Shown here: positions 3,181-46,022 of the stretch, piece after piece | Layout: every line of letters starts with the position of its first letter | How positions within the stretch are numbered: position 1 is the stretch's first letter | From: Blastocystis sp. Blastoise | Taxonomy: Eukaryota; Protista; Bigyra: Opalinata | DNA length: 64,000 bases | NCBI GenBank assembly: GCA_039096225.1 | Contig: JBBPEB010000022.1 | Coordinates: forward strand, 1 to 64,000 | Reading direction: 5' to 3' | Program-made: the position numbers and the translations under genes | The notes under the pieces: model-generated | Told to the model about the DNA's origin: nothing | Databases searched by the model: none | The model's input: only the letters and a program-made list of their open reading frames with translations

Positions 3181-3216
3181 ACAAACAAATATTTAAAAAA
3201 TGTAAAAAACTATAGT

Positions 3217-18891: not shown

Positions 18892-18934
<43 letters not shown>

Positions 18935-19512: not shown

Positions 19513-19578
19513 TTTTATGCTCTAGAAGGAGAGAAACAATCATATAGATTGTTTTCAGGTTCAATTCCTGACATAAAG
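19513..19578 (+). ncRNA. tRNA-like cloverleaf (5'-type, copy B)
   Basis: TTTTATG CTCT-AGAAGG-AGAG AAACAATC-ATATA-GATTGTTT TCAGG-TTCAATT-CCTGA CATAAAG. Confidence 0.7.
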
Positions 19579-19611
19579 TGTTATTTTTTTATTTTTTAAT
19601 ATTTTATTCAC

Positions 19612-19668
<57 letters not shown>

Positions 19669-22600
19669 TCTTTTTTAAATTTATTTTAAACCATTTTAAT
19701 TTATACTTTTCAATTTTGATCTTAAACATATATATCTAACTTTTTATAGCTTTTTTAGACTTCCTCTTCTTAACAACAGTCACAATGAGAACAAATCTAT
19801 TTATACTCAAACAAATAAATTATCTCTAAACTGTTTGAATCAATCAATATAGACGTGTCTGACATAATTTATCAATTTAAACTCAATTTTAATAATTAAA
19901 AGTAAACAAACCAAACACACATGTCGACTTTAAAACGTTAAACTCAGTATTAATAATTTATTTTTATAGAGTAAACACGAAACATTGATTTATACAAAAA
20001 GGAATGGAAACAATCAACTCTTGATACAACTTTACCATTTGGCAAAACACTCATCCACAATATTTTCTAAAGTACTTTTCATAAAGTGTTTATATACACA
20101 TGCTATCTATAAAATGAAAGTCAACTTCTTGAATCTCTTTGTTTAAGACACTACTTAATACATTTTGACAAATAGACAACCTTTAACTTATTATATAAAG
20201 CTAATATTTTAAAATTAAACTTGATTTAGACCTATGAACACATTAGTCAACACTTTAGACTTTTTAAAGACACTTTACCATTTGGTCATACACTTTGATC
20301 AAAATATTTTTGTCCCTCCTTTTAATATAATATAGGTTATACACTCTAGTTTAATGACTAAAAGCTCTTATTTTGAATCTCGTCCTCTAAGTCACTCATT
20401 TTTACATTTTCTAAAAATTAAGACCCTTAGAGTTGATTTTTTAAGTTAATTTTTCTACAGTGTTCCAAAAACACGATTTTGCTCAAACTGAAGTAAAAAT
20501 AAATTTTAAATAATAGTCACAACACCTCACACATCCATTCTTTAAAAATTATTTTAACTGTACTTTTGATATGTTGTAGAGCTACTATAGCTGTACACTA
20601 ATTAATATCTCTAAATTTTTTATTCATAGTTTAAGACTATGTTTTACACATTCTTTTAAATTTGACAACCTTAAACTATTTATTTAAAGCTCTTATTCAT
20701 AAAATAGACTTGATACATGATTCTAAACACATATATAAACCCTTTTACTTTTTAAGACACATTTTGTCATTTGGTCATACACTTTGACCTTCATAATTTT
20801 GACTCTCCTTTTAATATAGAATAGAGTTATAAGTCTAATTTACTAAATAAAAGTCATAATATTGAATCTCTCACTCTAAGACCACTTAATTCACATTTTT
20901 CAAAATTGTCACTTTTAAACTCGTTATTTTAAAACTCTGTTTTAACTATAGTAGTTTGATGACCTATTGATTACTATGCTACAATATTAGTCCATTATAA
21001 GAAGATCGAAGAAAAATATCGATCACTCAAAAATCGTCCTCAGGAGCTCAAAATCGCTACACCTAGGTTTTTGGACCTCCTGAATCAGAATATCATGTCA
21101 AATTGAGAATCTAAATTTGACCGTTAAGGCCTCACGTGTTCAATATGAAAAAGTATTAAAAAATAGATAAATATAAAGAATAAACACGGATAACGTATAT
21201 TGTGGGATTGAGAAAAAATCAAGTTTACCCCATGTTTATTTTTCAATTGTCTGGTCAACAATTTTTATCGGGGTCACCCCAAAGAGCCAATCAAAAACGA
21301 CTCAAAAATCATGTTTTCTGTTTTTTTATTAATAACTTTTTAATTATAAACAATATCGCTTATCCAAATATACGGTGCAAAACTACACGTTATATCGTAT
21401 TGAACTGTGTTTCAACCAAAAGTTAACTCCCCGTAAGTTTAGAGGAGTTGCGGCGACAAACTATAGTATACATTAGCCAATCAAATGGTTTTTCTAAAAA
21501 CTGACCAATGGGAATTTTTTTGCCTATTTGCTTTATAATAGTAATGATTGTGAGAAATATGATTAGCAGTGTTTGGGAAATATATTAGTAAATGTTTTAA
21601 TGTATTTTATACATAAAGAGTATACGATAAATGATGACTACGATTCTATATTGTTCCTAAAGTAGTTGAATGTTTTTATTTTGTTCTTTCACTTCTCAAT
21701 TCTGTAAAACCCTCCTATATATCAGAAATATTTAATTATTGTGTTTTTTTAGTTGACAAACTGGAAATGTTCTTGAATGTTGTTGACATTTTTTAAACGT
21801 TTTCATGATAGATGAGAATATTTCGTTTATCATAATATAATATACTTGTATATTACTTAAATAACAAATATTTATTTTATTTTGTAAACCACTTACAAAT
21901 AGTTTTTTCTTATGAATGTCAACATTTCTCATTTACACAAAGTATAGAAACCTTTGTTTCATTTATTTTTTATATATTGTTTTATCACCTTTAATATATT
22001 CTATACTTAAATCATTTTGTAATAAATAATTATTGTCAATAGAGATAAAATATTGTTTTAAATATGCCAAAAAAAACTTTTTTAAATACCTCTAATAAAC
22101 CGTCAGTCACATGTTGAACTATTTTAATATTCTAGTTAGAAATGAAACAACATAGAGATTTATAATAACAAAACAAAAAGATTTTGTGATATATTGTATA
22201 TTGTTTTCTGAAGAAAATTGCAAAATGGTTAAATTCAATAATAGCTAAGATTAATACTTTATTAATATCCTTAATTTAGTTCATGTAGCGTACGGTGTCT
22301 CACACACTTTCACTATTATTGACTTTGTTATTAACTTTTATAAAATAAAAATTACATCATAAAATCCAGAACACAATTCTGAAAATGACTGTTAAAGAAA
22401 TTTTTCAAAAACTCTAAATTTCTGGCTAAAAAACGGAAAAAACCATTTTCGCACAAAATTTTAACCAAAATTATTGGATTATTTTTATTTTATCCAATAT
22501 TTTTCATTTTTATAAAAACACTTATTTTTCGTTTTTCATTTTTTATTGTTTTCTTATTTTTCCTATATCACTTCACATACTCTATATTTATTTTTATAAA

Positions 22601-25600
22601 ATTGACTTTTATTGACGGGTTAGTCTTATAAATAGTTTTGACGGGTAAATTTGTTTATATTTACAACTTGACAACATATCAATACACACATCACTAACTA
22701 TAAACTCTAAAATGGTTTCAGTTGTTATGATACTGACCTCAACTACTCTGAAACCACAATAATTCCTTTAAATAACAACAAAAGTCAAACTGATATCCGA
22801 CACATTCCTTCTTTATAAACTTATTTGAGCTTTAATGTATTTATTTAACTCTGTATCCGTCATAAATATGTTTTATATTTTAATAATATGTTTTAATAAG
22901 AAAATATTTGATAATAGAAATTTTGATGTTTTGATAGTATAGTTTGTTATTCGTCTTTCTCCTTGAGTTTTGGGTATTTTTTAAAAATAAAAGTATAATT
23001 ATAATTAAGATAAGCTATTGCAGATACATATTTTTTATTTTATCTAAATATTTAATATTGACTGAGAAACATTCATTTATATGAAAAACATAAAAATGAA
23101 AATTTTCAAAAAAAGGGTATAGTTTGTTATTGTGATTTCTCAATCAATTCTTAATAAGATAAAAAAGTTAGAACATATTTAGAAACTAGACATGTCATAG
23201 CAGATACATATTTTTCATTTTTTTAATTAATTGAAAACTCAGGTGACAAGAGTCAATAGTTGAACTCAATAAAAAATGACTTTCAAAAAATTTTCTTAAA
23301 AAGTTTTCATTTGTTTTTTGTTTATATTTTCATCATTAACAATTTTATTTGATATTTGACTTTATATTTAAAAACTACATACCAAAATAAACATATTTTA
23401 CAATTTTATTTTGTTTTTAAAAGACTTTAACAACAGATCACCAGACAATGTTAACTCAATAAACTCTTAAAACGTTTTAATACGTGTTTAGAACCACTCA
23501 TAGACACTGTACGTGACTTATTTGAAAAAGTTAAGACAACATGTTGAACTGATACTGACAATGTTTGTTCTAAAAAGTTCATTATGAGTCTTTATGAGTT
23601 GTATATGTCATAAATAAACTTAAAATAAATAAATTTGTTTTTAATTGTCTTTAATTAGTGAAATAAGTCGTTTAAAAAGAAGAAAGCATTTTGGATACTA
23701 TAGTTTATTTTGACAATTTCTCCATCAATATTAATTTAAATAAAATAAATAAATCTTATTTATAAACTAGACAACCTATAGTTTATATATTTATAAAAAT
23801 ATTATCAAAATATAAAATAACTTTTGAGATAAAAAATTATATATACAAAACATAAAAAAATTAATTTTTGAAAAAAGGGTATACTTTATAACATTAATTT
23901 CTCAGTCAATATTTAATTATTTTATATAATTTTAACAAATAAATATAGAGAATAAAATATATTAATTATATTATTTTTAATATTTGAAATTAATAAAAAA
24001 ATGAGTTCAGTAGAGTCAATAGTGTAACATGTTAAAAAACTGAAAATTGAAAAATCATTTTTCTAAAAATTTTCCAAAAGTTGACAAATCAAATTCATAT
24101 TTGACAATTAATTTTTACATTTTTGAAAACTAGACCTTATATGTATTGCATATCTCAAAAAAATAGTCAAAAATAAGTTAGACGAGTGTATGAGTATATG
24201 CACATGTTGACTCATAATTTTGAAAAAAGTAGTTAAATATGTCCTAAACCACATATCAAAGCAATTCTATAAATATTATCACTTTATAATGAGTTTAAAG
24301 GGTAAAATAATTTTGAATTGTCTGTTTGACTGTCTTAAGTGAAGAGATTCAATACACTTTTTGTAAAAATGAGTATTAGAGTGTTTAATGTTTATAATAA
24401 TAAAAGAATTGTTTGAAATAAAGGTGGTTATGTGTTTGACCAAAATGTTAAAATGAGTCTATTTTTAAAAAATGGTTAGAATAAGAAAGTATTGAGTGTT
24501 TTTGGAGTATTTTATATTAAAATCTACAATAAATAAACATTTTAAGTTGTTTAAAAATTTGATTCTTTAGAATTACAATAGTTAAGTCAAGAGATTCAAG
24601 TCACTTTTTATAAAAATAATAAATAGACGTATTATAGAATATAAAATATTAAAAATTAGTCTAATTAAATGTGGTTGACTGTTTGATAGGAATGTTAAAA
24701 TGGGTAAAAAGATTTTAATTGTTTCTAAAACAGTATAATACGTTTTTTTGTCACTAAATAAAAGAATATTATTTTTATAAGAATGTTTTTTGTCTTTCAA
24801 AAGAACTCATTTTTTGTAATTGTGACTTTAAACAAAAGAGATTCAAGTTATCATTACTATATATATGAGAATAGGCAAAAAAATTCCCATTGGTCAGTTT
24901 TTGGAAAAACCATTTGATTGGCTAATGTATACTATAGTTTGTCGCCGCAACTCCTCTAAACTTACGGGGAGTTAACTTTTCGTTGAAACACAGTTCAATA
25001 GGATATAACATGTAGTTGTGCACCGTATATTTGGTTAAGCGATATTATTTATAATTAAAAAGTTATTAATAAAAGAACAGAAAACATGATTTTTGAGTCG
25101 TTTTTGATTGGCTCTTTGGGATCATCCCGATAAAAATTGTTGACCAGACAATTGAAAAATAAACATGGGGTAAACTTGATTTTTTATCAATCCCACAATA
25201 TACGTTATCCGTGTTTATTCTTTATATTTATCTATTTTTTAATACTTTTTCATATTGAACACGTGAGGCCTTAACGGTCAAATTTAGATTCTTATTTTGA
25301 CATGATATTCTGATTCAGGAGGTCAAAAAACCTAGGTGTAGCGATTTTGAGCTCCTGAGGACGATTTTTGAGTGATCGATATTTTCTTCGATCTTCTTAT
25401 AATTGACTAATATTGTATCATAGTAATCAATAGGTCCTCAAACTACTATAGTTAAAACAAAGTCTTAAAATAATGAGTTTGAGTGTCACAATTTTGAAAA
25501 ATGTGAATTAAGTGGTCTTAGAGTGAGAGATTCAATATAATGACTTTTATTTAGTAAACTAGACTTATAACTCTATACTATGTTAAAAGGAGAGTCAAAA

Positions 25601-26727
25601 TTATGATGGTCAAAGTGTATGACCAAATGACAAAATGTGTCTTAAAAAGTAAAAGGGTTTCTATATATGTTTAGAATCATGTATTAAGTCTATTTTATGA
25701 ATAAGAGCTTTAAATAAATAGTTTAAGGTTGTCAAATTTAAATAAATGTGTAAAACATAGTCTTAAACTTTGAATAAAAAATTTAGAGATATTAATTAGT
25801 GTGCAGCTATAGTAGCTCTACAACATATCAAAAGTACAAAGAAAATAATTTTTAAAGAGTTGATGTGTGAAGGGTTGTGACTATTATTTAAAATTTATTT
25901 TTACTTCAGTTTATACAAAATCGTGAATTTCGTGCACTGTAAAAAAACTGAGCCAAAAAGTCAACTCTAAGGGTCTTAATTTTTAGAAAATGTAAAAATG
26001 AGTGACTTAGAGGACGAGATTCAAAATAAGAGCTTTTAGTCATTAAACTAGAGTGTATGACCTATATTATATTAAAAGAAGGGACAAAAATATTTTGATC
26101 AAAGTGTATTAGCAAATGGTAAAGTGTCTTTAAAAGTGTTATGATGATGACAGTTGTGTTTAAGTAGTTAAATCAAGTTTACTCTTAAAATATCAGCTTT
26201 AAATAGCAAGTTAAAGGTTGTTAATTTGTCAAAATGTTTTAAACACTGTCTTAAACAAAGAGATTCAAGAAGTTGACTTTCATTTTATACATAATATGTG
26301 TATATAAACACTTTACTAAAAGAACTTTGGAAAATATTGTGGATGAGTGTTTTGTCAAATGGTAAAGTTGTGTCAAGAGTTAATTATTTTAATTCATTTT
26401 TGTTTAAATCAATGTTTTATGTCCACTCTATAAAAACTATCTTTTAATACTGAGTTTAACGTTTTAAAGTCGACATGTGTGTTTGGTTTGTTTACTTTTA
26501 ATTATTAAAATTGAGTTTAAATTGATAAATTATGTCAGACACGTCTATATTGATTGATTCAAACAGTTTAGAGATAATTTATTTGTTTGAGTATAAATAG
26601 ATTTGTTCTCATTGTGACTGTTGTTGAGAAGAGGAAGTCTAAAAAAACTATAAAAAGTTAGATATATATATATAAGGTCAAAATTGAAAAGTATAAATTA
26701 AACTGGATTAAAATAAATTAAAAAAAG

Positions 26728-26804
<77 letters not shown>

Positions 26805-26837
26805 GTGAATAAAATATTAAAAAATAAAAAAATAACA

Positions 26838-26903
26838 CTTTATGTCAGGAATTGAACCTGAAAACAATCTATATGATTGTTTCTCTCCTTCTAGAGCATA
26901 AAA
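26838..26903 (-). ncRNA. tRNA-like cloverleaf (5'-type, copy C)
   Basis: Reverse complement of the 19513-19578 element. Confidence 0.7.
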
Positions 26904-27476
26904 GGAGTTTATAAATAATAATAATAATCAAATATATATATATATATATATATAATAAGAAGGAAATGAAGTGGAAGGATGAGGAAGAAGGAAGTAGGAA
27001 GGATTAGGAAGAAGAAGTAAGAATAAGGAAGGATGAGGAAGAAGGATGAGAAAGAAGGAAGTAAGAAGAAGTAAGAATAAGGAAGGATGAGGAAGAAGGA
27101 AGAATCCAGAATGAAGAAGAAGTAAGTAAGAAGAATCAAAGATGAGGAAGAAGGAAGAAGGAAGTAGGAAGTAGGAAGCATGAATGAAGAATGAAATAGG
27201 AAGAAGGAAGCATGAATGGAGAAGGAAATAGGAAGAAGGAAGAAGGAATGAAGAAGGAAATAGGAAGTAGAAAGAATGAGAAAGAAGTAAGAAGGAAGAA
27301 GAAAGAAGAAAAAAAAAGAATAAGAAGATTTTAAACCTATATAAAATAGAAAACATATAAAAAAGATAATATAAATAATTAATAAATACATAAATAAATA
27401 TTAAAAATAAATAAATAAACATATAAAATAAATAAATAATAATAAATAAATAAACATATAAATATAATAAATATAA

Positions 27477-27515
<39 letters not shown>

Positions 27516-28287
27516 AATAAATAAATAAATAAATAAATAAAATAAATTTAATAAATAAAATATAAATAAATAAAGAAACAATAAATAACAAAAATAATAA
27601 ATAAAATATAAATATATACATATAAATCAACCTGAAACCACAGATTTAAAAGAAAGACATGAAAAAACGAAGAGTATAACACACACATCAGTTACATTTT
27701 CTTCCCTATAGAATAAAAATAACTAATAATCTATTGATTAATTATATATAAAGAAAATATAAACCAAAAAGATAATAAAAAAAGAAACAATTAAAGAAAC
27801 AAATGAATTAAAAATGAAATATTATAAAAAATATATATATTTATATACCTGACACTAAATAAACCATTTCATTTAACCAGGACCACTTCAAGAACCACTA
27901 ACCATGACAACCAAGGCAAATACAAGAGAATCCTATAAAGAAGTGTATTATTTTAAATAAATAAATTAGTATATAAATAGATAAATATAATACTAAGTTA
28001 AATAACTTTAAATAAATAAATAAAACACACTAAGTCAATCAATACAATAAAATATTTAAAAAAGAGTAAAGAACTATGTTTTTTGGGTACCCAAAATGAT
28101 TTTAAACCAGAATGACCCAATTATTACTTTTGTAATAAAATCAATGAAAAATTAAGGCTATTTTTGATTTCTATTATGTTTTAAGAAGCATATTTTAAAA
28201 ATAGACCCTATTATATTTATTAATTCAAATGAAATAGGATTGTTAAATACATAATCTAATACTCATTTATATATTAAATTATTAATT

Positions 28288-29568
28288 ATGATGTCTAAGA
28301 ACAACAAAATTGCTTCAAGGTGGAGGTCTGGAAATAAAAAATAATTTATATTTCAAAGAAAATCAGGTATATTGTATCTATTTGTTATTAGTATTCATAT
28401 TTAGGTTCTTCTACTCAATAAAATCCAGTTGTGTATGCTCTTGGTCTTGGTGGTACTTGCTATGATGGTCTTTAAGGTATATATTTTTCCATTTCTTTTT
28501 TTTTTTAATTATTTATTATATTATTTTAGGTTCTTCTATGCTATTTGAATTATGCAGTGGTGGTGGTGTTGCCTGTTATGCTAACTGTGAAGGTATGTTG
28601 TCAATGATTTGTTTTTATTTTTTTAACTTTTCTTTATTTATAGGTTCTTCTGTTATTGTAAGTGATTCCAATAGTGATATCGGTGTTGATGTAGGTTCTT
28701 CTTGCTTTATAGATGGTATGTTACCAATCATTTATTTTTTTTTTATATTTTATTATTATTTTTTTATTATTTCTATATATATATAGGTTCTTCAGTTGTT
28801 GTACATGTTAACAGTGATGTTGATAATAGATGTCTGTGTGGTGTTGAAGGTATGTTGTCATTCATTTATTTTTTTTTTTTACTTTTATATATATAGGTTT
28901 GTTTTATTGATGTAAATGTTGCTGTTGATGTTGTTGGTGATCAGGTAGACTGCTCATATGATATTAAAGGTATATATATATTGTCATTCATTTATTATTA
29001 TTTTTTTTTTATTTATTATTTGTCTATTACTGTTTCTTTATAGGTTATTCTACTGTTGTGGTTGTAGTTGCTGAACGTATTAATGATGAAGGTTGTCTAC
29101 TTTTTAAATTTAATTTAGTTTATTATTATTTTTATCTTATATAGGTCGTTCTTTTCTTATGGAGTCTTGGATTAATAGTAATAATGATACAGGTATATTC
29201 TTATTTCTTCCTTTCTTTTTTTTTTGATTTATTAATTATCTTTTCATTATATATAGGTTCTTCAAGTCAGTTAAGATATCATGGTGATTCCTCTGTTCCT
29301 TCTTTAGAAGGTATATATATATATTTATTGTTTATATATATTTTATCATTTATTATATTATATATAGGTGTCTTTTCTAATAGGGGATCTTATCACCCTA
29401 ATGTTAGCTTTCATTTTAATAATAAAAATGTATCTAAAGGTATATATATATATATATAACAAATATTTATAATATTTCTTTTAATATATATATGTTAGAT
29501 ATATTTATTATACTATCTCTTATTATATATATATATCTTTTATCTATATAGGTTCTCTTAGTGTTATG
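28288..29568 (+). pseudogene. Micro-exon array (copy C); stops present, introns 1-3 present
   Basis: Introns 28367-28404, 28477-28529, 28593-28643 and onward; AAA TAA in exon 1 and CAA TAA in exon 2. Confidence 0.8.
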
Positions 29569-31060
29569 GTTATGTTTAGATTTTTTTTTTTTTTAGTTCT
29601 TTTTCTTTTTCTTTTGCTTATTATTATTATTATTTTTCACATTTAATAGCTTTCTATTATCTGCTTTCTTTATATTATTTATTTATTTATGCTGTTGTTA
29701 TCGTTTTAGCTATTCTATATTTAAATGTTTTCTTTTGCTATTTTTGTTTTGTTCTTTTTCTTTTTTTTTTATTTAAATTGTGTCGACTATTAAGATAATT
29801 CTTGAAATACTTAGTATGTTAAATAGTGTCAAGTTTTTAAATATTTGAATTAAATTTTAAAACATTTATTGTCACTTTTAACACTGTATAGTATTACTGA
29901 TTTAAAACTGTCAATAATTGAGATATTTAAGTTTTGAGTTTCTCTGTTTACTCGCATTTATATTTACATAATTTTGTGAACGTATTAACTCATAAAAGTA
30001 ACTTTAAGGTTGTAAAATAAAAAATATTATCTTAAAATAGGAGATTCGAAATTCTAATAGAAGTTTAATATATAATAAGCTAAATTCTACAACATATTAA
30101 AAAATAAGAGAATTTCATTTTTGAAAAGTGAATTAACAATGTGTTTGAGTTGTCTAGAAATTTTAAAGAGTTAGTATATTCTTTTAAAATTGTGTTTTCA
30201 TTAGACTATGAAAATTTTGACTTTTAAAAACAAGTTTAAAGGGATTAATATTTTTAAATGTAGAAATGAATTATCCAAAGGATGAGATTCAATATAAAAT
30301 ATTTTATTTATCAAACTATGAATTATATTCTAAATTATATCAAAAGAAAGGACAAAAATACACTTGACAAAGTGTATGACCAAATGTAAAATGTTTATAA
30401 AGAGTGTCAAAATGGTGACTCTTATGTTGATAGAGTTATGATGAGTATAATGTTATAATATTAGCTTTTAAAATTAATTATAAGTGTGTCAACCTTTCAA
30501 AATGTGTTAAAAATGATCTTGAAGTCAGAGATTCAAGACATTAAACTTGAATTAATAAATAAAATAATGAGATCTATACTATGTGAAAGTTATGTCTAAA
30601 ACTATTTTGATACACTTGATATCGAAATGGTAAAGTCTCTCTAAAAGTAATATTGTTGACACTTTTGTGTTTAGAAATGCTATTTAGATTGAATTTATTA
30701 ATATTAATTCAAAAACTTTGTGTTTAAGTTGTTAAAGTCAAAATGAATGTTGACTTTGTTGTGTTAGATTTGTTTTAGTTTTATGAAATGATTAAAATAA
30801 GTTTATGCTATTTTATTATAATCTATTTAAAATGATTTTACAACATAAAAATATTTTTCAATACTTAACATTATGACCCATTTCTAAATTTATTAGCTTT
30901 AGAAACTCCATAATAATTAAAGCAGTAACTCAACTATTTATAAATACAAAATATATTTTTAAAATAATAAATAACAAATATAATGATTCAAAAAGGATTT
31001 CTTATTTTCTTCAAGTATTGTTTTTAGTTTTTCAGATACTATTCAAATAATCTATTTAGT

Positions 31061-31128
31061 TCTTATATCAGGAATTGAACCTGATTACAATCAATAAATG
31101 ATTGCTACTCTCCATATAGAGTATAAGA
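31061..31128 (-). ncRNA. tRNA-like cloverleaf (3'-type, copy C)
   Basis: Same fold as 15193-15260, with a GCAATC/GATTGT G-U pair. Confidence 0.7.
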
Positions 31129-32292
31129 AGTGTTATTAAAATAATATATATAATATATAATATATAATATATAATAAGTAACATATTATAGATAATATTT
31201 AATAAATAATATATATTATATAATATATAATATATAATATATAATAGATAAAAAGGAAAGAAAGTAAATAAAAACCAAACAGTTATTATTCATTGCAGCC
31301 GCGGTCCGGTGCCGTTAGGCCCCGGACCTGCGGCGTGACCCTAGTTTTTTATAAATTAAAATACTAAATTAAATATATATGTATATTAATATAAAATTCG
31401 TTTTAACAAAAGTGGATATGTGTATTTAAAAACGTTAAAATCTTTTAGAGTTTTTTAAAAATAACTTATTTGTTTTATAAACTATATTTTATGTATAATA
31501 GGTAAAGTTTCCAAAGTATTTAAATCTATTTAGTTATGAAATGGAATGTAATTTTTGGTTTATATTTAGTTTTTCGTTTCATTTAATGAAATGATTTTGA
31601 TAACACTATAAAAATTGAATTAAACTTGAATTAATTAATTTTAAATAATGAAAAGATAATTTCTCTATAAATATTCTCTTTTACTTAAAACGAATAGATT
31701 CTATTAATGATAAATATTAAAATAAGACTCTAATTTTTTTGTTTAGTATATAAAGTAATAAATATCTTTTAATTATTAAGAGTACTTTTGTATTAATAAT
31801 TCAAACTAAAATAAGTATAATAAAAGAAAAATTATAATATTTATCAAATAATATCAAGATATGATTACTATTTATATAATTAAACATTTATTAATTGAGA
31901 AAAGCTGTATAATAAAATTTCTAAAATATTTATATAATAGTATATATAAAAGGAAAGGATAAAATATAAAAAAACAAATAGATATCAAAATTATAATATT
32001 TTAAAAATAAAACAAAACAATATATGAAAAGAATATATAATGTTTTTTTTAGACAAGAGAATAAGCTATTTCTCACAATAATAATTATATAGACTAATTC
32101 AAATAAAACATAAATATTTAAAGGTAGGGTATAAGTGATAATAATATGTTTTAAAAGAAAAAGTATTTTATAATCATATTGATATTATTTAAAATACTAA
32201 ATATTTATAAAACTAAATGAATTGATAAAATACATAGAAAGTTATAAATGAAATAACAAAGAAAAGTGAATTAATATTGAAAACTAAAAACT

Positions 32293-32519: not shown

Positions 32520-33558
32520 AGATCAAAAATAAAACACAAGAGTTAATTAATTATCATTGATAAACAATAAATATATATAATCAATAATAAAAATGGCTAA
32601 AAAGAATATTAAAAAAAAAAAGGAAATAATACTCAAGAACATATAGAATGTTAAGTAAGAATTATCAATATGTATGAATTAAATTATTTAAAATACTAAA
32701 TTGAAAATTAAGATTAGAAGATAACAATTAAAAGCAATTGAAATAATATTTTATAGAATATGAAATAGTTTTAATCCTAAAAAAAATAAAAACAGAAATG
32801 AATAACAAAAACATAAGAATAAATATTCATTTTTTAAAATTCACTGTAAGATATAACAATTGAGAGATAATAATTATCTAAACTCAAGCGTAGGCTGGCG
32901 TAGCCAGTCGTGAAACGCTTGTTTATCTAAATTCTCTGCATTATCAAGTATTTATTGTAAATATATAAAGAATTTGAAATTAAATATTTTTAAAGAAAAA
33001 TTGAGAAGAAAACTAGAAAAATAGTGTTTTTTGGCAAATAGTTTAAAAGAGTCTTTGAGTTATATCTTATAATATTGCATTCACAGAGTAACTAATCTTG
33101 TCTTCTTACGTGATATTCGTACTTAAGTGTTTCAAAATAAGTAGTTACAGAGTTTTGTTTAATTGCCATTTTCGGTATTTTATTTTTTGATTTTAAAGTT
33201 GGTTTTCTAATAAATAAAATTAAAATGACTATCTTAATAAAAAAAAGTTTATATTATACTGAAATACATATACAAAATGTTGGACAATTGTGAGCCAAAT
33301 CTTTAGAAACTTAATGTAAACTTACAAGAATCTAAACTTTGGTAGCTGACATCCTTATGATTAAAAATCATTATTATCATTACTATATACTAGGGTCACG
33401 CCGCAGGTCCGGGGCCTAACGGCACCGGACCGCGGCTGCAAAGAATAATAACAGTTTGGCTTTTATTTTCTTTTTTTCATTATTATCTATTATATATAAT
33501 ATATAATATATATTATATACTATATATTATATATTATATATATTATTTTATTAACACT

Positions 33559-33626
33559 TCTTATACTCTATATGGAGAGTAATAATCATTTGTTGATTAT
33601 AATCAGGTTCAATTCCTGATATAATT
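33559..33626 (+). ncRNA. tRNA-like cloverleaf (3'-type, copy D)
   Basis: ATAATC/GATTAT compensatory variant of ACAATC/GATTGT; T-arm intact. Confidence 0.65.
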
Positions 33627-34917
33627 ATTAAATTGATCATTTGAATAGTATCTGAAAAACTAAAAACAATACTTAAAAAAATGAGAAACCCTTTTTGAAT
33701 CATTATATTTGTTATTTATTATTTTAAAAATATATATTGTATTTATAAATAGTTAAGTTACTATTTTAATTATTATGGAGTTTCTAAAGCTAATAAATTT
33801 AGAAATGGCTCACAATGTTAAGTATTGAAAGTCATTATTATGTAAAATCATTTTAAATAGATTATAATAAGGTAGTTTACACTTTCTTTAATCATTTCAT
33901 AAAACCAAAACCCATTTAACACAACAAAGTCAACATTCATTTTCACTTTAACGACTTAAACACATAGTTTTAGAATTAATATTAATAAAGTCACTTTAAA
34001 TAGCATTTCTATACATAAAGGTGTCAACAATATCGGTTTTAGAGAGACTTCACCATTTTGATATCCAGTGTATCAAAATAGTTTTAAACATAACTTTCAC
34101 ACAATATAGATCTCATTGTGTTATATATTAATTAAAATTTGATGTCTTGAATCTCTGATATAGAGACCCTTTTTTATACATTTTGAAAAGTTGACACACT
34201 TAAAGTTAATTTAAAAAGCTAACATTTACACACTATACTCAGCATAACTCTATAAACACGTTAATAACGATTTTAACACTCTTTATAAGCCTTTTACATT
34301 TGGTCATACACTTTGTCAAGTGTATTTCTGTCCCTCGTTTTGATATAGTTTAAAACATAAATTATAGTTTGATAAATAAAATGTTTCGTATTGAATCGCA
34401 TCCTCCTAAAACTTATTATTATATTTTTTTTAAATAAAACCCTTTAAACTTGTTTTTAAAAGTCAGTACTTTCATATTATAACAAAAACACAGTTTTAAA
34501 CAAACAGACAAACTCTTTTAAATTTTTAGACAACTCAAACACATTTTTAATTCACTTGTGAAAAATAAAATTATTTTAATTTTTTACATGTTGTAGAGTG
34601 CATGCTATTTTATATTAAACAATTTTTAGAATTTTTAATCTCTTAGTTGAAGAGCCTATTTTTTAACATTTATTAATTTTTACAATTTTACATATAATAA
34701 ACTATATAAAAAAAGTATGTGGAGGATTCAAAACTTAATAATAAGTCAATTATTGATATGATTACATTGGTGAGTCTATATAGAATTAGATGAGATCAAT
34801 AAATGTTTTAATTAAATTAAATACAAAGATTAAAATGATCCATACTATTAATATTAACTAATTTAACAATTGTTTTAATAGTCAACAATTAAAATTAAAA
34901 AACAAAGCAAAAAAACA

Positions 34918-34948
<31 letters not shown>

Positions 34949-35093
34949 CAAAGTATTATATTAAATAAGTAAATATAGATTAGCTAAAGCTAAACAAAGT
35001 AAATAAATAGATATATAAAGAAAGAAAATATAAATAAAAAATAATAAGCAAAAGAAAAAGAAAATTAAAAAAATAAAAACATTCTAAGTATAC

Positions 35094-36352
35094 CCATCAT
35101 ATTAGAAAAGCCTAAAAAATAAAAGACATATATATATATATATATATAAGAGATATAATAATAAATATATGATATATATATATACCTTTAAGTATTAGAG
35201 ACCTATCCACACTATCACCTATATAGATAAAGATATATATATAAAAGATACATTATAATAAATATATGTAATATATATATATACCTTTAGATATATTTCT
35301 ATTTATAAGAATAAACATTATCATCATGATGATAGTATTCCAAATTAGATGGTACACCTATATATAATAAATGATTGAGATAATAATAATAATATACATG
35401 AATAAACAATAAATATATATATATATATACCTTCTAAAGAAGGAACAGAAGAATAACCATGATATCATAACTGAGTTGAACAACCTATATATGAACAAAT
35501 TAGTATTAATAAAATAAAAAGAAATTAAAAAATAAAGAAATATGAATATACCTGTATCATTACCTATAATAGAAGACTCGATCAGAATAGAAGGACCTAT
35601 ATATAAATAATAAATAAAAATAAACTAAATTAAATTTAAAAAATAGACATACCTTAATTATTAACACCTTCAGCAACCACACACACAACAATAAAAGAAC
35701 CTATAAAGAAACAGTAATAGACAAATAATAAATAAAAAAATAATAATAATAAATGAATGACAATATATATATATACCTTTAATACCATAGGAACAGTCTA
35801 CCTGATCACCAACAACATCAGCAGCAGTATTGAAAACATCAGAAGAACCTAAATATATATAAAAGTAAAAAAGAAAAATAAATGAATGACAACATACCTT
35901 CAACACTACACAGATATCTTCATCTACACCACTGTTTACATGCACAACAACTGAAGAACCTATATATACAAAGAAATAACAAAAGAAAAATATAATAAAA
36001 TAAATGATTGGCAACATACCTTCAATACCATAAGAGGAACCTATATCTACGTAAACAGAACCATTAGCATCATTTAAAGCAACAGAAGAACCTATAAATA
36101 AAGAAAAATTAAAGAAATAAAAACAAATCATTGACAACATACCTTCACAGTTAGCATAACAGGCAACACCACAGCCTCCGTATGATACAAATAACATAGA
36201 AGAACCTTTAAGACCATCAGAGCAAGTAATACCAAGACCAAGAACATACACAACTGGATCCTATTGAGTAGAAGAACCTGAAAGTTTTTGAGAAATGTAT
36301 ATTTTTCCATCTACACACTTCGATCTTGACAGCATCATGCCTTCTGAGGCAT
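35094..36352 (-). pseudogene. Micro-exon array (copy D); introns 1 and 2 precisely absent
   Basis: Exon-exon fusions at 36278/36277 and 36206/36205; intron 3 (36142-36092) retained. Confidence 0.8.
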
Positions 36353-37882
36353 CTTAGATAATATTTTAATTATAAAAAATAAGTGTTTTCTCTTAATATA
36401 AAAATTGTGTTTATATTTCTACTTTTAAAGAAAAGGGTCTTTTATAAAAATATGCTTCTTAAAATCTAATAGAAATCAAAAATACCCTTGAGTTTTCATT
36501 GATTTATTTACAAAAGTAATAATTGGGTCATTTTCTATTAAAAACATTTATGGTACCCAAAAAACATAGTTTTTTACATTTTTTAAATATTTGATTATAT
36601 TATTTGATTCTGTATATTTTATTTATTTATTTGATATTGTTTTATATTGCATTATATCTATCTATCTATATAGTTATTTATTTATTCAAAATAATACACT
36701 TTTTTATAGGATTCTCTTGTATTTGTCTTGGTTGTTGTAGTAAAGAGTTCTTGAAGTGGTCACGGCTATGTGAATTGGATTACTTTGTGTCAGGTATATA
36801 ATATATATTTATTTTTATAGTATTTGTTTTTTAATTCTCTCATTACTTTGTTTTATTTTATATTTTTGTTATCTATATTATTTATTTTGTCTTTTTATAT
36901 CATTTATTAAATAGTTTTTAATTATTTTTATTCTATAGGAAAGAAAATGTTGTTGATGTGTTGTCGTCTTCGTTTTTTCATGTCATTCTTCTTTAGTCTG
37001 TGGTTTCAGATTAATCTATTAGGTATATATTTATATTTTATTTATTATTTTCATTTTTATTATTTATTATTTATGTTTTTTATTTATTTATTTATGTTTT
37101 TTATTTATTTATTTATTATATTTATTTATTTATTTATTATATTTATTTATTATATTTATTATATTTATTTATTATATTTATTTATTTATTATATTTATTT
37201 ATTTATTTATTTATTATATTTATTTATTTATTATTTATTTATTATTTATTTATTTTTATATGTTTTCTATTATATATAGGTTTTATAGTCTTCTTGTTCT
37301 TTTTTCTTCTTTCTTCCTTCTTTCTTCTTCATTTTACTTCTTCCTTCTTCCTTATCCTTCCTACTTCTTTCTTCCTTCTTTCTTCCTTCTTTCTTCTTCC
37401 GTCTTTCTTATCCTTCCTACTTCTTTCTTCCTTCCTTCCTCATCCGTCATTCTTCCTTCCTTATTCTTCCTTCTTCCTCATCCTACTTACTTCTTCCTTC
37501 TTTCTCATCCTTCTTTCTCATCCTTCTTCCGTCTTCCTTATTCTTCCTACTTCCTTCTTCCTCATCTGGCATTCTTCCTACTTCTTCCTACTTCTTCCTA
37601 CTTCTTCCTGCTTCATCATTCATCATTTCCTTCTTCCTGCTTCCTTCTTTCTTCTTTCCCATCCTTGATTCTTCCTTCTTCCTTCTTCCTCATCCTTCAT
37701 CCTTGTTTTTTCCTTCTTCTTCCTCATTCTTCCTTCTTCCTCATCATTCCTACTTTTACATCCTTCCTCATTCTTCCTTCTTCCTCATCCTTCCTCATCC
37801 TTCCTACTTCATTCTTCCTCATTCTTCATTCTTTCTTCTTTCTTCCTACTTCCTACTTCTTTCTTCCTACTTCCTTCATTCC

Positions 37883-37923
<41 letters not shown>

Positions 37924-37948
37924 ATTATTATTATTATTTATAAACTCC

Positions 37949-38015
37949 CTTTATGCTCTAGAAGGAGAGAAGCAATCATTATAGATTGTTTTCAGGTTCA
38001 ATTCCTGACATGAAG
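37949..38015 (+). ncRNA. tRNA-like cloverleaf (5'-type, copy D)
   Basis: CTTTATG...TCAGGTTCAATTCCTGA CATGAAG. Confidence 0.7.
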
Positions 38016-41000
38016 TGTTATTTTTCTCCTGTTTTTTAATATTTTTTTTTACATATTATTATTATATATATATATTCTCTTTTTTAAATTCATTTTAATC
38101 CATTTTACTTTATACTTTTCAATTTTGACATTGCATACATATATCTAACTTTTTATAGTTTTTTTTAGACTTCCTCTTCTCAACAACAGTCAGAATGAGA
38201 ACAAAATCCATTTTAACTCGAGCAACTAAGTCATCTCAAAACTGTTTGAATCAATCAATATAGACGTGTATGTCATAATTTATCATTTTAAACTGATTTT
38301 CAACTCTCAAAAGTAAACAAACCAAACACACATGTTGACTTTTAAACGTTAAACTCAGTATTAAAAGGTTATTTTTATAGAGTAGACATAAAACATTGAT
38401 TTAAACAAAAATGAATGGAAACAATCAACTCTTGATACAACTTTGCCATTTGACAAAACACTCATCCACAATATTTTCCAAAGTTCTTTTAGTAAAGTGT
38501 TTATATATACATGTTATGTATAAAATGAAAGTCAACTTCTTGAATCTCTTTGTTTAAGACACGCTTTAAAACATTTTGACAAATTGACAACCTTTAACTG
38601 GTTATTTAAAGTTGATATTTTAAGAGTAAACTTGATTTAGACCCTTAAACACAACTGGCATCACCATAACACTTTTAAAGACACTTTACCATTTGGTCAT
38701 ACACTTTGATCAAAACATTTTCGTCCCTTCTTTTAATATAATATAGATCATACACTCTAGTTTAATGAATAAACACTCAAATATTGAATCTCGTCCTCTA
38801 AGTTACTCATTTTTACATTTTTTTAAATTAAGACCCTTAGAGTTGATTTTTTGACTCAATTTTTCTACAGTGCACGAAATTCACGATTTTGCTCAAACTG
38901 AAGTAAAAATAAATTTTAAATAATAGTCACAACCCTTCACACATCCACTCTCTAAAAATTATTTTCTTTGTACTTTTGATATGTTGTAGAGCTACTACAG
39001 CTGTACACTAATTAATATCTCTAAATTTTTTATTCATAGTTTAAGACTATGTTTTACACATTCTTTTGAATTTGACAACCTTAAACTATTTATTTAAAGC
39101 TCTTATTCATAGAATTGACTTGACTTAACATTTGAAACACATATAGACACCCTTTTACTTTTTAAGACACATTTTGTCATTTGGTGATACACTTTGACCA
39201 TCATAATTTTGACTTTCCTTTTAACATAGTATAGAGTATTATCTCTAGTTTACTAAACAAAAGTCATTATATTGAATCTTATCCTCTAAGACCACTTAAT
39301 TCACATTTTTCAGAATTGTGACACTCAAACTCATTATTTTAAGACTCTGTTTTAACTATAGTAGTTTGAGGACCTATTGATTACAATACTGTAATATTAG
39401 TCGATTATAAGAAGATCAAAGAAAATATCGATCACTCAAAAATCGTCCTCAGGAGCTCAAAATTGGTACACCTAGGTTTTTTGACCTCCTGAATCAGAAT
39501 ATGATGTCAAATTAAGAATCTAAATTTGACCGTTAAGGCCTCACGTGTTCAATATGAAAAAGTATTAAAAAATAGATAAATATAAAGAATAAACACGGAT
39601 AACGTATATTGTGGGATTGAGAAAAAATCAAGTTTACCCCATGTTTATTTTCCAATTGTCTGGTCAACAATTTTTATCGGGACGATCCCAAAGAGCCAAT
39701 CAAAAACGACTCAAAAATCATGTTTTCTGTTCTTTTATTAATAACTTTTTAATTATAAACAATATCGCTTAACCAAATATATGGTGCACAACTACATGTT
39801 ATATCCTATTGAACTGTGTTTCAACCAAAAGTTAACTCCCCGTAAGTTTAGAGGAGTTGTGGGTACAAACTATAGTATACCTTAACCAATCAAATGCATT
39901 TTCCAAAAACTGACCAATGGGAATTTTTTTGCCTATTCTCATATATATAGTAATGATATGAGAATAGGCAAAAAAATTCCCATTGGTCAGTTTTTGGAGA
40001 ATGCATTTGATTGGCTACTATATACTATAGTTTGTCGCCGCAACTCCTCTAAACTTACGGGAAGTTAACTTTTGGTTGAAACACAGTTCAATAGGATATA
40101 ACGTGTAGTTGTGCACCGTATATTTGGTTAAGCGATATTATTTATAATTAAAAAGATATTAATAAAAGAACAGAAAACATGATTTTTGAGTCGTTTTTGA
40201 TTGGCTCTTTGGGGTGACCCCGATAAAAATTGTTGACCAGACAATTGGAAAATAAACATGGGGTAAACTTGATTTTTTCTCAATCCCACAATATACGTTA
40301 TCCGTGTTTATTCTTTATATTTATCTATTTTTTAATACTTTTTCATATTGAACACGTGAGGCCTTAACGGTCAAATTTAGATTGTCAATTTGACATCATA
40401 TTCTGATTCAGGAGGTCAGAAAACCTAGGTGTAGCGATTTTGAGCTCCTGAAGACGATTTTTGAGTGATCGATATTTTCTTCGATCTTCTTATAATGGAC
40501 TAATATTACAGCATTGTAATCAATAGGTCATCAAACTACTATAGTTAAAACAGAGTCTTAAAATAATGAGTTTAAGTATGACAATTTTGAAAAATGTGAA
40601 TTAAGTGGTCTTAGAGGACAAGATTCAATACAATGACTTTTATTTAGTAAACTTGAGATATTACTCTATTCTATGTTAAAAGGAGAGTCAAAATTATGAA
40701 GATCAAAGTGTATGACCAAATGACAAAATGTGTCTTAAATAGTAAAAGGGTTTCTATATGTGTTTAGAATCATGTATTAAGTATATTCTATGAATAAGAG
40801 CTTTAAATAAATAGTTTAAGGTTGTCAAATTCAAAAGAATGTATAAAACATAGTCTTAAACTATGAATAAAAAATTTAGAGATATTAATTAGTGTACAGC
40901 TGTAGTAGCTCTACAACATATCAAAAGTACAAAGAAAATAATTTTTAGAGAGTGGATGTGTGAAGGGTTGTGACTATTATTTAAAATTTATTTTTACTTC

Positions 41001-41879
41001 AGTTTGAGCAAAATCGTGAATTTCGTGCACTGTAGAAAAATTAACTTCAAAAATCAACTCTAAGGGTCTTAATTTTCAAAGATGTAAAAATGAGTGACTT
41101 AGAGGACGAGATTCAAAATTCCGCCTCACTTTCATATAACTAGACCACACAGTCTATATTATGTCAAAAGAAGGGACAAAAATATTTTGATCAAAGTGTA
41201 TGACCAAATGGTAAAGTGTCTTTAAAAGTGTTATGGTGATGACAGTTGTGTTTACATGTCTGAATCAAGTCTATTCTTTAAATATTAGCTTTAAATTGCA
41301 AGTTAAAGGTTGTCAATTTGTCAAACTGTTTTAAAGACTATCTTAAACAAAGAGATTCAAGAAGTTGACTTTCATTTTATACATAATATGTCTATATAAA
41401 CACTTTACTAAAAGAACTTTGGAAAATATTGTGGATGAGTGTTTTGTCAAATGGTAAAGTTGTATCAAGAGTGAATTGTTTCCATTCCTTTTTGTTTAAA
41501 TCAATGTTTTATGTCCACTCTATAAAAACTATCTTTTAATACTGAGTTTAACGTTTTAAAGTCAACATGTGTGTTTGGTTTGCTTACTTTTGAGAGTTGA
41601 AAATCAGTTTAAATTGATAAATTATGTCATAGACGTCTATATTAATTGATTCAAGCAGTTTTGAGATGACTTAGTTGTTTGAGTTAAAATGGATTTGTTC
41701 TCATTGTGACTGTTGTTGAGAAGAGGAAGTCTAAAAAAACTATAAACAGTTAGATATATGTATATAATGTCAAAATTTAAAAGGTATAATCTAAAAGAGA
41801 TAAAAATAAGTTTAAAAAAAGAGAAAATATATATATATATATAATATGTAAAAAATATTAAAGAAAAAGAAAAATAAGA

Positions 41880-41946
41880 CTTCATGTCAGGAATTGAACC
41901 TGAAAACAATCTATAATGATTGTTTCTCTCCTTCTGGAGCATAAAG
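41880..41946 (-). ncRNA. tRNA-like cloverleaf (5'-type, copy E)
   Basis: Same fold as 1922-1988. Confidence 0.7.
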
Positions 41947-42490
41947 GGAGTTTATAAATAATAATAATAATCAAATATATATATTTATATATATATAATA
42001 AGAAGGAAATGAAGTGGAAGGATGAGGAAGAAGGAAGTAGGAAGGATTAGGAAGAAGAAGTAAGAATAAGGAAGGATGAGGAAGAAGGATGAGAAAGAAG
42101 GAAGTAAGAAGAAGTAAGAATAAGGAAGGATGAGGAAGAAGGAAGAATCCAGAATGAAGAAGAAGTAAGTAAGAAGAATCAAAGATGAGGAAGAAGGAAG
42201 AAGGAAGTAGGAAGTAGGAAGCATGAATGAAGAATGAAATAGGAAGAAGGAAGCATGAATGGAGAAGGAAATAGGAAGAAGGAAGAAGGAATGAAGAAGG
42301 AAATAGGAAGAAGGAAGAAGGAAGAAGAAGGAAGGAAGAAGAAGTAAGTAGGAAAGATGAGGAAGAAGGAAGAAGTAAGAAGGAAGAAGAACGAAGATAG
42401 AAAGAAGAAAAAAAAACTAAGAAGAATATTAAACCTATATACAATAAATAAACATAATAAATAAATAAATAAATAAATAAATAATAAACA

Positions 42491-42540
<50 letters not shown>

Positions 42541-43328
42541 TAAATAAATAAACATATAAAAAAAATGAATAAATAAATAATAAATAAATAAATAAATAAT
42601 AAAAAAAAAGTAAACAATAAATAATAAAAATAATAAATAAAATATAAATATATACCTTTAAAATAACCTTGAACGACAGATTAAAGAAGGAAAATATTTA
42701 GCAACGAAGACCACAACACATCCATTAAAGTTTCTTTCCTATAGAATAAAAATTATTAATAATATATAGAATAAATTATATGTAAAGACTAAATAAATAA
42801 TATTGATAATAAAAATAATAAATAATAAAAACGAATTAACAAAAAGAAAAACAGATCTTAAGAAATAAATAATATATTTATATACCTGATCATAAATAAA
42901 CCATTTTACACAGCCAAGACCACTTCAAGAACACTTCAACACCACAACCAAGGAAAATACAAAAGAATCCTATAGAAAAGTGTATTATTTTAAATAAATA
43001 AATATATACATACAAATATATATAAAAATAATAACTAAACAATATCAAATAAATAAATAAAACATACTCAGTCAATCAATATAATTAAATATTTAAAAAA
43101 AGAGTAAAGAACTATGTTTTTTGGGTACCCAAAATGATTTTAAATAAGAATGACCCAATTATTACTTTAGTAACAAAATCAATAAAAAATTAAGGTTTTT
43201 TTTTATTTCTATTATGTTTAAAGAAGCATATTTTGAAAATAGACCCTATTATATTTATTAATACAAATGAAATAGGATTCTTAAATACATATTCAAATAC
43301 TTAATTGTATATTATATTATTAAATAAG

Positions 43329-44464
43329 ATGTCTGAAAACAACAAAATGTCATCCAGGAGGAGGCCTGGAAATAAAAAATAATTTATATTTCAAAGAAAA
43401 TCAGGTTCTTCTACTCAATAAAATCCAGTTGTGTATGCTCTTGGTCTTGGTGGTACTTGCTATGATGGTCTTTAAGGTTCTTCTATGCTATTTGAATTAT
43501 GCAGTGGTGGTGGTGTTGCCTGTTATGCTAACTGTGAAGGTTCTTCTGTTATTGTAAGTGATTCCAATAGTGATATCGGTGTTGATGTAGGTTCTTCTTG
43601 CTTTATAGATGGTATGTTACCAATCATTTATTTTTTTTTTATATTTTATTATTATTTTTTTATTATTTCTATATATATATAGGTTCTTCAGTTGTTGTAC
43701 ATGTTAACAGTGATGTTGATAATAGATGTCTGTGTGGTGTTGAAGGTATGTTGTCATTCATTTATTTCTTTTTTTACTTTTATATATATAGATTTGTTTT
43801 ATTGATGTAAATGTTGCTATGGATGTTGTTGGTGATCAGGTAGACTGCTCATATGATATTAAAGGTATATATATATTGTCATTCATTTATTATTATTTTT
43901 TTTTTATTTATTATTTGTCTATTACTGTTTCTTTATAGGTTATTCTACTGTTGTGGTTGTAGTTGCTGAACGTATTAATGATGAAGGTATGTCTACTTTT
44001 TAAATTTAATTTAGTTTATTATTATTTTTATCTTATATAGGTCGTTCTTTTCTTATGGAGTCTTGGATTAATAGTAATAATGATACAGGTATATTCTTAT
44101 TTCTTCCTTTCTTTTTTTTTTGATTTATTAATTATCTTTTCATTATATATAGGTTCTTCAAGTCAGTTAAGATATCATGGTGATTCCTCTGTTCCTTCTT
44201 TAGAAGGTATATATATATATTTATTGTTTATATATATTTTATCATTTATTATATTATATATAGGTGTCTTTTCTAATAGGGGATCTTATCACCCTAATGT
44301 TAGCTTTCATTTTAATAATAAAAATGTATCTAAAGGTATATATATATATATATAACAAATATTTATAATATTTCTTTTAATATATATATGTTAGATATAT
44401 TTATTATACTATCTCTTATTATATATATATATCTTTTATTTATATAGGTTCTCTTAGTTTTATT
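43329..44464 (+). pseudogene. Micro-exon array (copy E); introns 1-3 precisely absent
   Basis: Fusions at 43404/43405, 43476/43477, 43539/43540 relative to copy C. Confidence 0.85.
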
Positions 44465-45954
44465 GTTATGTTTAGATTTTTTTTTTTTTAGTTCTTTTTC
44501 TTTTTCTTTTGTTTATTATTATTATTATTTTTCACATTTAATAGCTTTCTATTATCTGCTTTCTTTATATTATTTATTTATTTATGCTGTTGTTATCGTT
44601 TTAGCTATTCTATATTTAAATGTTTTCTTTTGCTATTTTTGTTTTGTTCTTTTTTTTTTTTTTTATTTAAATTGTGTCGACTATTAAGATAATTCTTGAA
44701 ATACTTAGTATGTTAAATAGTGTCAAGTTTTTAAATATTTGAATTAAATTTTAAAACATTTATTGTCACTTTTAACACTGTATAGTATTACTGATTTAAA
44801 ACTGTCAATAATTGAGATATTTAAGTTTTGAGTTTCTCTGTTTACTAGCATTTATATTTACATAATTTTGTGAACGTATTAACTCATAAAAGTAACTTTA
44901 AGGTTGTAAAATAAAAAATATTATCTTAAAATAGGAGATTCGAAATTCTAATAGAAGTTTAATATATAATAAGCTAAATTCTACAACATATTAAAAAATA
45001 AGAGAATTTCATTTTTGAAAAGTGAATTAACAATGTGTTTGAGTTGTCTAGAAATTTTAAAGAGTTAGTATATTCTTTTAAAATTGTGTTTTCATTAGAC
45101 TATGAAAATTTTGACTTTTAAAAACAAGTTTAAAGGGATTAATATTTTTAAATGTAGAAATGAATTATCCAAAGGATGAGATTCAATATAAAATATTTTA
45201 TTTATCAAACTATGAATTATATTCTAAATTATATCAAAAGAAAGGACAAAAATACACTTGACAAAGTGTATGACCAAATGTAAAATGTTTATAAAGAGTG
45301 TCAAAATGGTGACTCTTATGTTGATAGAGTTATGATGAGTATAGTGTTATAATATTAGCTTTTAAAATTAATTATAAGTGTGTCAACCTTTCAAAATGTG
45401 TTAAAAATGATCTTGAAGTCAGAGATTCAAGACATTAAACTTGAATTAATAAATAAAATAATGAGATCTATACTATGTGGAAGTTATGTCTAAAACTATT
45501 TTGATACACTTGATATCGAAATGGTAAAGTCTCTCTAAAAGTAATATTGTTGACACTTTTGTGTTTAGAAATGCTATTTAGATTGAATTTATTAATATTA
45601 ATTCAAAAACTTTGTGTTTAAGTCGTTAAAGTCAAAATGAATGTTGACTTTGTTGTGTTAGATTTGTTTTATTTTTATGAAATGATTAAAATAAGTTTAT
45701 GCTATTTTATTATAATCTATTTAAAATGATTTTACAACATAAAAATATTTTTCAATACTTAACATTATGACCCATTTCTAAATTTATTACCTTTAGAAAC
45801 TCCATAATAATTAAAACAGTAATTTAACTATTTATAAATACAAAATATATTTTTAAAATAATAAATAACAAATATAATGATTCAAAAAGGATTTCTTATT
45901 TTCTTCAAGTATTGTTTTTAGTTTTTCAGATACTATTCAAATAATCTATTTAGT

Positions 45955-46022
45955 TCTTATATCAGGAATTGAACCTGATTACAATCAATAAATGATTGCT
46001 ACTCTCCATATAGAGTATAAGA
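45955..46022 (-). ncRNA. tRNA-like cloverleaf (3'-type, copy E)
   Basis: Same sequence as 31061-31128. Confidence 0.7.

Follow-up and report, generated by a model that had tools for sequence, protein, structure and literature searches.

A Helitron inserted in the 5' terminus of another Helitron in an AT-rich protist genome: a rare event, possibly at a mild hot spot

The stretch of DNA analysed here (the window, the first 64 kb of contig C11 in a 33.3-Mb assembly of 34 contigs with ~23% G+C) contains one Helitron, copy D, lying inverted inside the 5' terminus of another, copy E. The insertion is of the canonical nested kind: the guest is complete, the target is A|T and the target site is not duplicated. 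The choice of target by Helitrons is commonly summed up as A|T in AT-rich DNA, and a first reading of the window, made from the letters alone, had gone further in proposing that Helitrons are directed to the 5'-terminal motifs of other Helitrons. That strong self-targeting claim does not hold. Across the genome, insertion of a Helitron into the first 13 nt of another is a rare event and not a general self-targeting rule, although three such insertions, within nt 9-13, do exist. The explanation that we favour, and which we regard as evenly balanced between being right and being wrong, is that the 5' terminus acts as a mild hot spot, one that arises incidentally from transposase chemistry and does not amount to a dedicated system for capturing incoming elements or disabling rivals.

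The first 46 kb of the window form a transposon island at the contig end, and comparison of copies within the window distinguishes five Helitron copies in it, A to E. Copies of the family start TCATTAC.. and end ..CCCTAG, giving 5'-TC and CTRR-3' ends without terminal inverted repeats, and their GC-rich 3' hairpins, which fold at about -33 and -34 kcal/mol (copy A about -34), end 6-10 nt short of the 3' end. Copy A (1..12063, plus strand), delimited by BLAST to copy C, is an autonomous Helitron; the contig begins at its nt 15, and its 3' end is a hairpin variant of its own, ..GTTACCCTAG at 12063. The RepHel ORF of this copy (7148-11827) is intact, running for 1,559 aa without a stop, and matches Pfam Helitron_like_N (2e-56) and PIF1 (2e-64), with the HUH motif (HSH) at residue 533 and the YxxxY motif, as YIYKY, at 676-680. 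Copy C (24851..31344, plus strand; 6,494 bp) is intact and non-autonomous, has no long ORF, and served as the reference for Helitron comparisons; its target, GTTA|TTTT, lies within another high-copy element that is itself nested in a TIR transposon, R. Copies B (14963..21547, minus strand) and D (33390..39956, minus strand; complete, 6,567 bp) are also non-autonomous, and copy E is divided by D into nt 1-13, its 5' terminal sequence, at 33377..33389 and the remainder, from nt 14 to the 3' end, at 39957..46238, both on the plus strand, with CTAG at 46235-46238.

The A|T target is used without target-site duplication throughout the family: in the flank listings from the pattern searches, which omit ~15-20% of flanks (those whose last scanned base was G or C), T begins 109 of the 109 3' flanks listed and A ends 95 of the 95 genuine 5' flanks. 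In its termini, 3' hairpin, A|T target and RepHel domains this is therefore a canonical Helitron (Helitron1) family. We considered whether the 13 nt that follow the CTAG of D might instead be a terminal inverted repeat of the Helitron2 or Helentron-like kind, and this was ruled out by copies C and E, which lack those 13 nt at that place. The 3' hairpin stems of the autonomous (12004-12063) and non-autonomous (31285-31344) elements differ in sequence and have the same shape and loop, with compensatory changes between them.

The nesting of D in E can be followed base by base. On the plus strand, 33377-33389 reads TCATTACTATATA, and from 33390 a Helitron 3' end, with its hairpin and CTAG, can be read in reverse complement. 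This is copy D, inverted, which finishes with its own 5' terminus (TCATTAC..) at 39956, and from 39957 on the sequence reads TATGAGAATAGGC.. When 33377-33389 is joined to 39957 onward, the product is identical, base for base, to the first 49 nt of the intact copy C (24851..). Since the rejoined start of E is the start of copy C, and since D is complete, this comparison shows that D entered E cleanly, between A13 and T14. In this respect the sequence-only reading was correct, having placed D in inverted orientation at an A|T after nt 13 of E with a base-perfect rejoined end.

The target of E itself had also been taken for a motif resembling a Helitron 5' end, and this did not survive comparison with related loci. 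The flanks of E are TCATTATTA | TATATTAAT, and the uninterrupted site, ..AAAAATCATTATTATATATCAATATAAGC.., is present in two paralogues (on C14 and C17; 95% identical) with one substitution and no duplication. These empty sites prove that E was inserted. They also place its target inside R, a ~1.5-kb non-autonomous TIR transposon whose ends, as paralogue comparison revealed, are inverted repeats of ~57 nt with GGAAAAACCGGGTTTTTTCC-like palindromes. The downstream sequence CAGT..TTTTTGGAAAAACC at 46297, previously seen as an echo of the Helitron family, is the terminal inverted repeat of R and is found inverted at the opposite end of that element, and we therefore rejected the idea that E entered an old Helitron 5' end. 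R occurs in at least four places, with paralogues on C14, C17, C23 and C5. The copy in the window hosts three separate nests and is split by nested elements into three plus-strand parts, each recognised from the paralogues: a left-central part at 21548-22263 (~95% identical to C14 and C17), a part at 32919-33376 that ends in TCATTATTA and so supplies the 5' half of the E target, and the right end at 46239-46359, which carries the terminal inverted repeat and supplies the 3' half. Another transposon begins at ~46356, after the right end of R.

The empty site of E nevertheless agrees with 13 of the first 14 nt of the Helitron terminus. How often such a likeness should arise can be gauged from a background sample of 259 kb of Helitron-rich DNA (C6 whole, C7 from 1 to 80 kb, and the C11 window): non-Helitron look-alikes of those first 14 nt, with at most one mismatch, number ~8 per 259 kb, and one insertion of the E kind into a look-alike would be expected by chance ~0.16 times among 125 insertions. 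The high-copy element that hosts copy C sits in R at 22257-24850 and 31345-32918 and has more than 40 copies, many of them 95-99% identical. A GC-rich stretch spans 32881-32922.

Copy B had been described as sitting in a further Helitron, H0, and here the earlier description was right in one part and wrong in another. A stub at 14952..14962 (plus strand), TCATTACTATA, corresponds to nt 1-11 of a Helitron 5' terminus and directly adjoins B at the latter's inverted 3' end, the remainder of H0 having been deleted. Immediately upstream, at 14300..14951 (plus strand), lies a fragment of a repeat, T, which belongs to a high-copy family unrelated to the Helitron, and whose homology to 100%-identical copies ends exactly at 14951|14952 (C15:100168 and C15:110064 match positions 1-653 only of the T query). 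As the start of H0 coincides exactly with the loss of T homology, the stub is best read as that of a Helitron inserted into T at A|T. The DNA beyond the 5' end of B (21548..), on the other hand, is R, which at that point is preceded by ..TTTCATTTGTAA in the paralogues. The two flanks of B are therefore not one target site, and we rejected a simple interrupted Helitron that resumes after B.

Copy B itself is apparently recombinant, its identity to copy C being 95.8% over the 5' 4.65 kb of B and 88.7% over its 3' 1.9 kb. The simplest reading would be that a minus-strand guest in H0 recombined with another in R, an event in which ~430 nt of T, the left end of R and whatever else remained of H0 may have been lost. 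A single large repeat family, T, which includes a TA-rich minisatellite, accounts for both 14300-14951 and 46356-46838, stretches that lie ~430 nt apart in other T copies. The 100%-identical copies of T at C15:100168 and C15:110064 form an inverted pair.

Beyond the A|T step itself, the family prefers ..TA|TA.. and often enters microsatellites of the (TA)n or (TAA)n type. Of 90 3' flanks, 68 have A at +2, and of 95 5' flanks, 51 have T at -2; the last three bases of these 5' flanks are ATA (39), TAA (24), TTA (12), AAA (12), ACA (7) and AGA (1). About 14 of the 90 3' flanks start TATATA, several of these being long (TA)n, and ~12 of the 90 are (TAA)n, with some copies having matching (TAA)n on the 5' side as well. 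The Helitron 5' terminus contains a 9-nt TA tract of its own, TATATATAT, at nt 8-16, and the three terminus insertions sit at successive A|T steps of this tract (nt 9, 11 and 13). Taken as a whole, ~1 in 8 insertions lie in microsatellites of (TAA)n and have that repeat on either side, and a similar share lie in long (TA)n; examples of such insertions are at C20:966877-973248 and at C24:255307-255356, where two copies are parted only by (TAA)8.

A more specific attraction to TCATTAYTA had also been suggested, and enrichment of this kind was not apparent. TCATTA lies 0-12 nt upstream in 5 of ~160 genuine 5' ends (C3:420585, C6:20906, C6:109775, C11:33368 and C14:1075030), compared with 2.7 expected from a background of 1.7% at A|T sites; the difference is not significant (P ~0.14), and generic targeting of TCATTA near insertion sites was rejected. 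TCATTAYTA units are frequent in low-complexity repeats elsewhere.

The frequency of terminus insertions was established by pattern searches over the 33.3 Mb. These returned 105 Helitron 3' ends of the non-autonomous type and at least 127 5' regions; the autonomous type has at least 20 3' ends, 19 of them retrieved by the search and one at 12063. Of the 100 5' regions listed, all are intact but for those at C6 and C11 and a single odd copy. Genome-wide, exactly three 3' ends have an inverted 5' start within the next 16 nt, and in each case the guest is inverted: at C6:21862, after nt 9 of the host; at C11:14952, after nt 11; and at C11:33377, after nt 13. The reciprocal head-to-head junction, in which the inverted 5' end abuts the remainder of the host terminus, occurs twice, on C6 and on C11, and the genome-wide pattern search returned no direct-orientation guest inside a terminus. 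On C6 the guest (39795 to 21871, minus strand) is autonomous and contains nested copies of its own, and it lies in a non-autonomous host whose rejoined start is identical to that of copy C, and the junctions are base-perfect in both of the complete cases, C11 and C6. A spacing of 7 nt separates the C6 host terminus from a long (TA)n microsatellite, and such a microsatellite is by itself a strong target. Genome-wide junction searches found no second copy of any composite, such as E with D.

The terminus is thus hit by ~2% of insertions, that is, at 3 of at least 125 3' ends, in counts that include segmental duplicates (for example, identical flanks on C1, C6 and C10). A dedicated target would receive most insertions, and this one does not. 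The proportion in the sequence-only reading, by which three of four young insertions hit nt 9-13, was a local figure. In the 259-kb sample there are ~11 insertions of one Helitron in another, three of which are in the terminus and two in or beside an internal (TA)n near nt 1,930-2,100, the rest being scattered in the body of the element. Outside the terminus four nested insertions are inverted and four direct, whereas within it all three are inverted.

Some further features of the nests may be recorded. The whole of the 115-kb contig C6 (C6:1-114926) is a Helitron-dominated island with nesting up to three levels deep, and host flanks on it are 100% identical over 150 nt to window copies A and C, which points either to very recent activity or to segmental duplication. 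The pattern search also found head-to-tail junctions of the form CTAG-TA-TCATTAC at C1:410916 and C10:16524, probably a single event that was duplicated later, and CTAG-TAA-TCATTAC occurs four times in a tandem array of ~3-kb period at C4:1507553-1540195.

Three events are few, and how unexpected they are depends upon the null that is chosen. The background sample, whose regions were picked partly for containing the terminus cases, holds 39,255 A|T sites, 22.5% of them in a TA|TA context and 3,825 in perfect TA runs of at least 8 nt; its 22 terminus tracts contribute 88 A|T sites, or 0.22% of all sites and 2.0-2.3% of those in TA runs. If the preferences at -2 and +2 are taken to be independent, ~41% of insertions use TA|TA, so terminus sites weigh ~1.6 times the average. 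With all 125 insertions assigned to regions as dense as the sample, regions that were chosen post hoc, ~0.45 terminus insertions would be expected against the 3 observed (Poisson P(>=3) ~0.01). A null confined to TA runs, whether sites or whole runs are counted, gives ~0.5-0.7 (P ~0.01-0.03), and spreading insertions uniformly over the genome gives ~0.02 (P ~1e-6). An excess of insertions in the first 9-13 nt over a TA-aware null is thus partly supported, by three events and from counts that contain duplicates. The hypothesis itself arose from the window, where two of the three lie; the sole independent replicate (C6) has a chance P of ~0.1-0.3 under the cluster null, and the finding that 3 of 3 guests are inverted carries a one-sided P of only 0.125.

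It may therefore be asked whether anything other than coincidence is at work. A preference for TA steps, together with clustering in islands that are half Helitron, might bring about the three hits, in which case neither they nor their orientation would carry meaning; we think this a possible explanation, if a rather doubtful one. The hits are spread over nt 9, 11 and 13, as would be expected of a TA tract and not of a fixed distance from a bound protein, and the element's internal (TA)n receives insertions too. Termini also make up 12-13% of the 9-nt TA runs in the sampled islands (19 intact plus 3 hit, of 162), and the chance expectation for E's look-alike target and the lack of TCATTA enrichment can be placed on the same side. 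However, even the most generous null predicts no more than ~0.45-0.7 insertions, and TA runs of at least 8 nt, which comprise 9.7% of A|T sites, take only ~12-18% of insertions, so that the per-site preference for TA runs is weak; the single orientation common to all three events also argues against coincidence.

The remaining explanations appear considerably less probable. According to the strongest form of the earlier proposal, RepHel bound to a terminus captures incoming circles, with TCATTAYTATA as a preferred site, and the resulting nests spare host genes while rival copies are disabled or fused. The three terminus insertions are real, further head-to-tail junctions close to element ends have spacers of 2-3 nt (those on C1 and C10 and the four on C4), and maize Helitrons are reported to insert near or inside other Helitrons (PMC3288121). 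We nonetheless consider capture improbable: ~98% of insertions are elsewhere, many of them in ordinary microsatellites and unique flanks, at least 124 listed 5' ends are intact, and the target of E is not a Helitron end. The low frequency and the lack of a second copy of any composite, which leaves no sign of spreading fusion elements, contradict the model. Were the transposase instead to recognise TCATTAYTA(TA)n anywhere, whether in a Helitron end or in R, and to insert just 3' of it, the 13 of 14 nt matched by the empty site of E and the five genuine 5' ends with TCATTA upstream would be accounted for. This is less probable still, given that the background alone predicts about half of those five, that look-alikes outside Helitrons are not scarce in the sample, and that E is in direct orientation whereas the insertions into true termini are all inverted. 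Finally, the arrangement might involve no insertion at all, being either an assembly chimera or a fold-back inverted duplication made by rolling-circle copying at a palindromic TA tract. In favour of this are the position of the window at a contig end rich in repeats and the self-complementarity of the TA tract, but the guest D is complete from TC to CTAG, the host E rejoins perfectly, and the same anatomy recurs at a second locus on another contig, C6, with an autonomous guest in a non-autonomous host. D and E are, moreover, only 79-90% identical, and are hence independent and not sister copies, which excludes a fold-back duplication; we regard explanations of this type as extremely unlikely.

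Returning to the mild hot spot that we favour, the anatomy of the insertions, the genome-wide counts and the target preference are demonstrated by the sequence, and to these we add, by inference, a role for single-stranded DNA and for the bottom strand of the host. An inverted guest implies that the guest strand was joined to the bottom strand of the host. At the 5' end of a resident copy, RepHel would nick and peel the top strand, and this would leave the AT-rich bottom strand single-stranded, the form that an HUH nuclease can cut. A second transposase-DNA complex could then take the exposed bottom strand as its target, yielding an inverted guest. The terminus would be a mild hot spot because its AT-rich DNA is opened by RepHel itself. 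That it is a genuine hot spot, at which guests would always enter inverted because RepHel exposes the bottom strand, is a proposal that we make tentatively, judging it slightly more apt to fail than to hold.

There is some biochemical precedent for such a scheme. In vitro, the purified transposase of Helraiser, a reconstructed bat Helitron, cleaves the bottom strand of the Helraiser 5' end at an internal AT, its HUH domain cleaves single-stranded DNA only, and the AT-rich stretch beside the 5' cleavage site was remarked upon (PMC4778049). Helraiser resembles the present family in its A|T target and AT-rich surroundings but differs in that no integration into the 5' end was reported (PMC4778049), and it is we who would connect its bottom-strand cut with the inverted guests seen here. 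If the proposal is true, then that unexplained cut in the 5' terminus would acquire a meaning in vivo, and there would be a route to head-to-head Helitron pairs and to orientation-reversed composites.

Nesting near a 5' end is already a known kind of event. Maize Helitrons are reported to insert near or inside others and to form multi-terminus elements (Yang & Bennetzen 2009; Du et al. 2009, in PMC3288121), and one of them is described as having entered its ancestor's 5' terminus no more than 25 bp from the end (PMC3288121). The present family shares this nesting near or inside other Helitrons; unlike the maize cases, its guests are inverted and located at nt 9-13 in a TA tract, its composites are not remobilised, and the rate has been measured, at ~2%. 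In Fusarium oxysporum, copies of FoHeli1 with two to five 5' termini have been attributed to self-insertion near the 5' end (PMC5148889; PMC13342296), which is a likeness in that one copy enters close to the 5' end of another. FoHeli is, however, Helitron2-like with a TNAT|A-type target, and its duplicated termini are direct and are carried into new copies, whereas the family studied here is canonical (TC..CTAG, A|T) with inverted guests and no multi-terminus derivatives. A preference for TA microsatellites is shared with MuTAnT, a DNA transposon that targets them and builds nested arrays, though MuTAnT belongs to another superfamily and has another mechanism (PMC4486113). The features that may be new in the present case are the exact site of insertion, the restriction of guests to the bottom-strand orientation and a frequency that has been measured.

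An orientation-specific excess at the 5' terminus, if measured, would offer a cheap genomic read-out of single-stranded DNA during Helitron transposition, and would help to explain how multi-terminus Helitrons and head-to-head pairs come about. For the present, the locus serves chiefly as a well-resolved case of ordinary nesting in the AT-rich genome of a protist with a recently active Helitron family. Further along the window, a pair of neighbouring GC-rich stretches at 49297-49381 looks like a putative tRNA gene on the minus strand.
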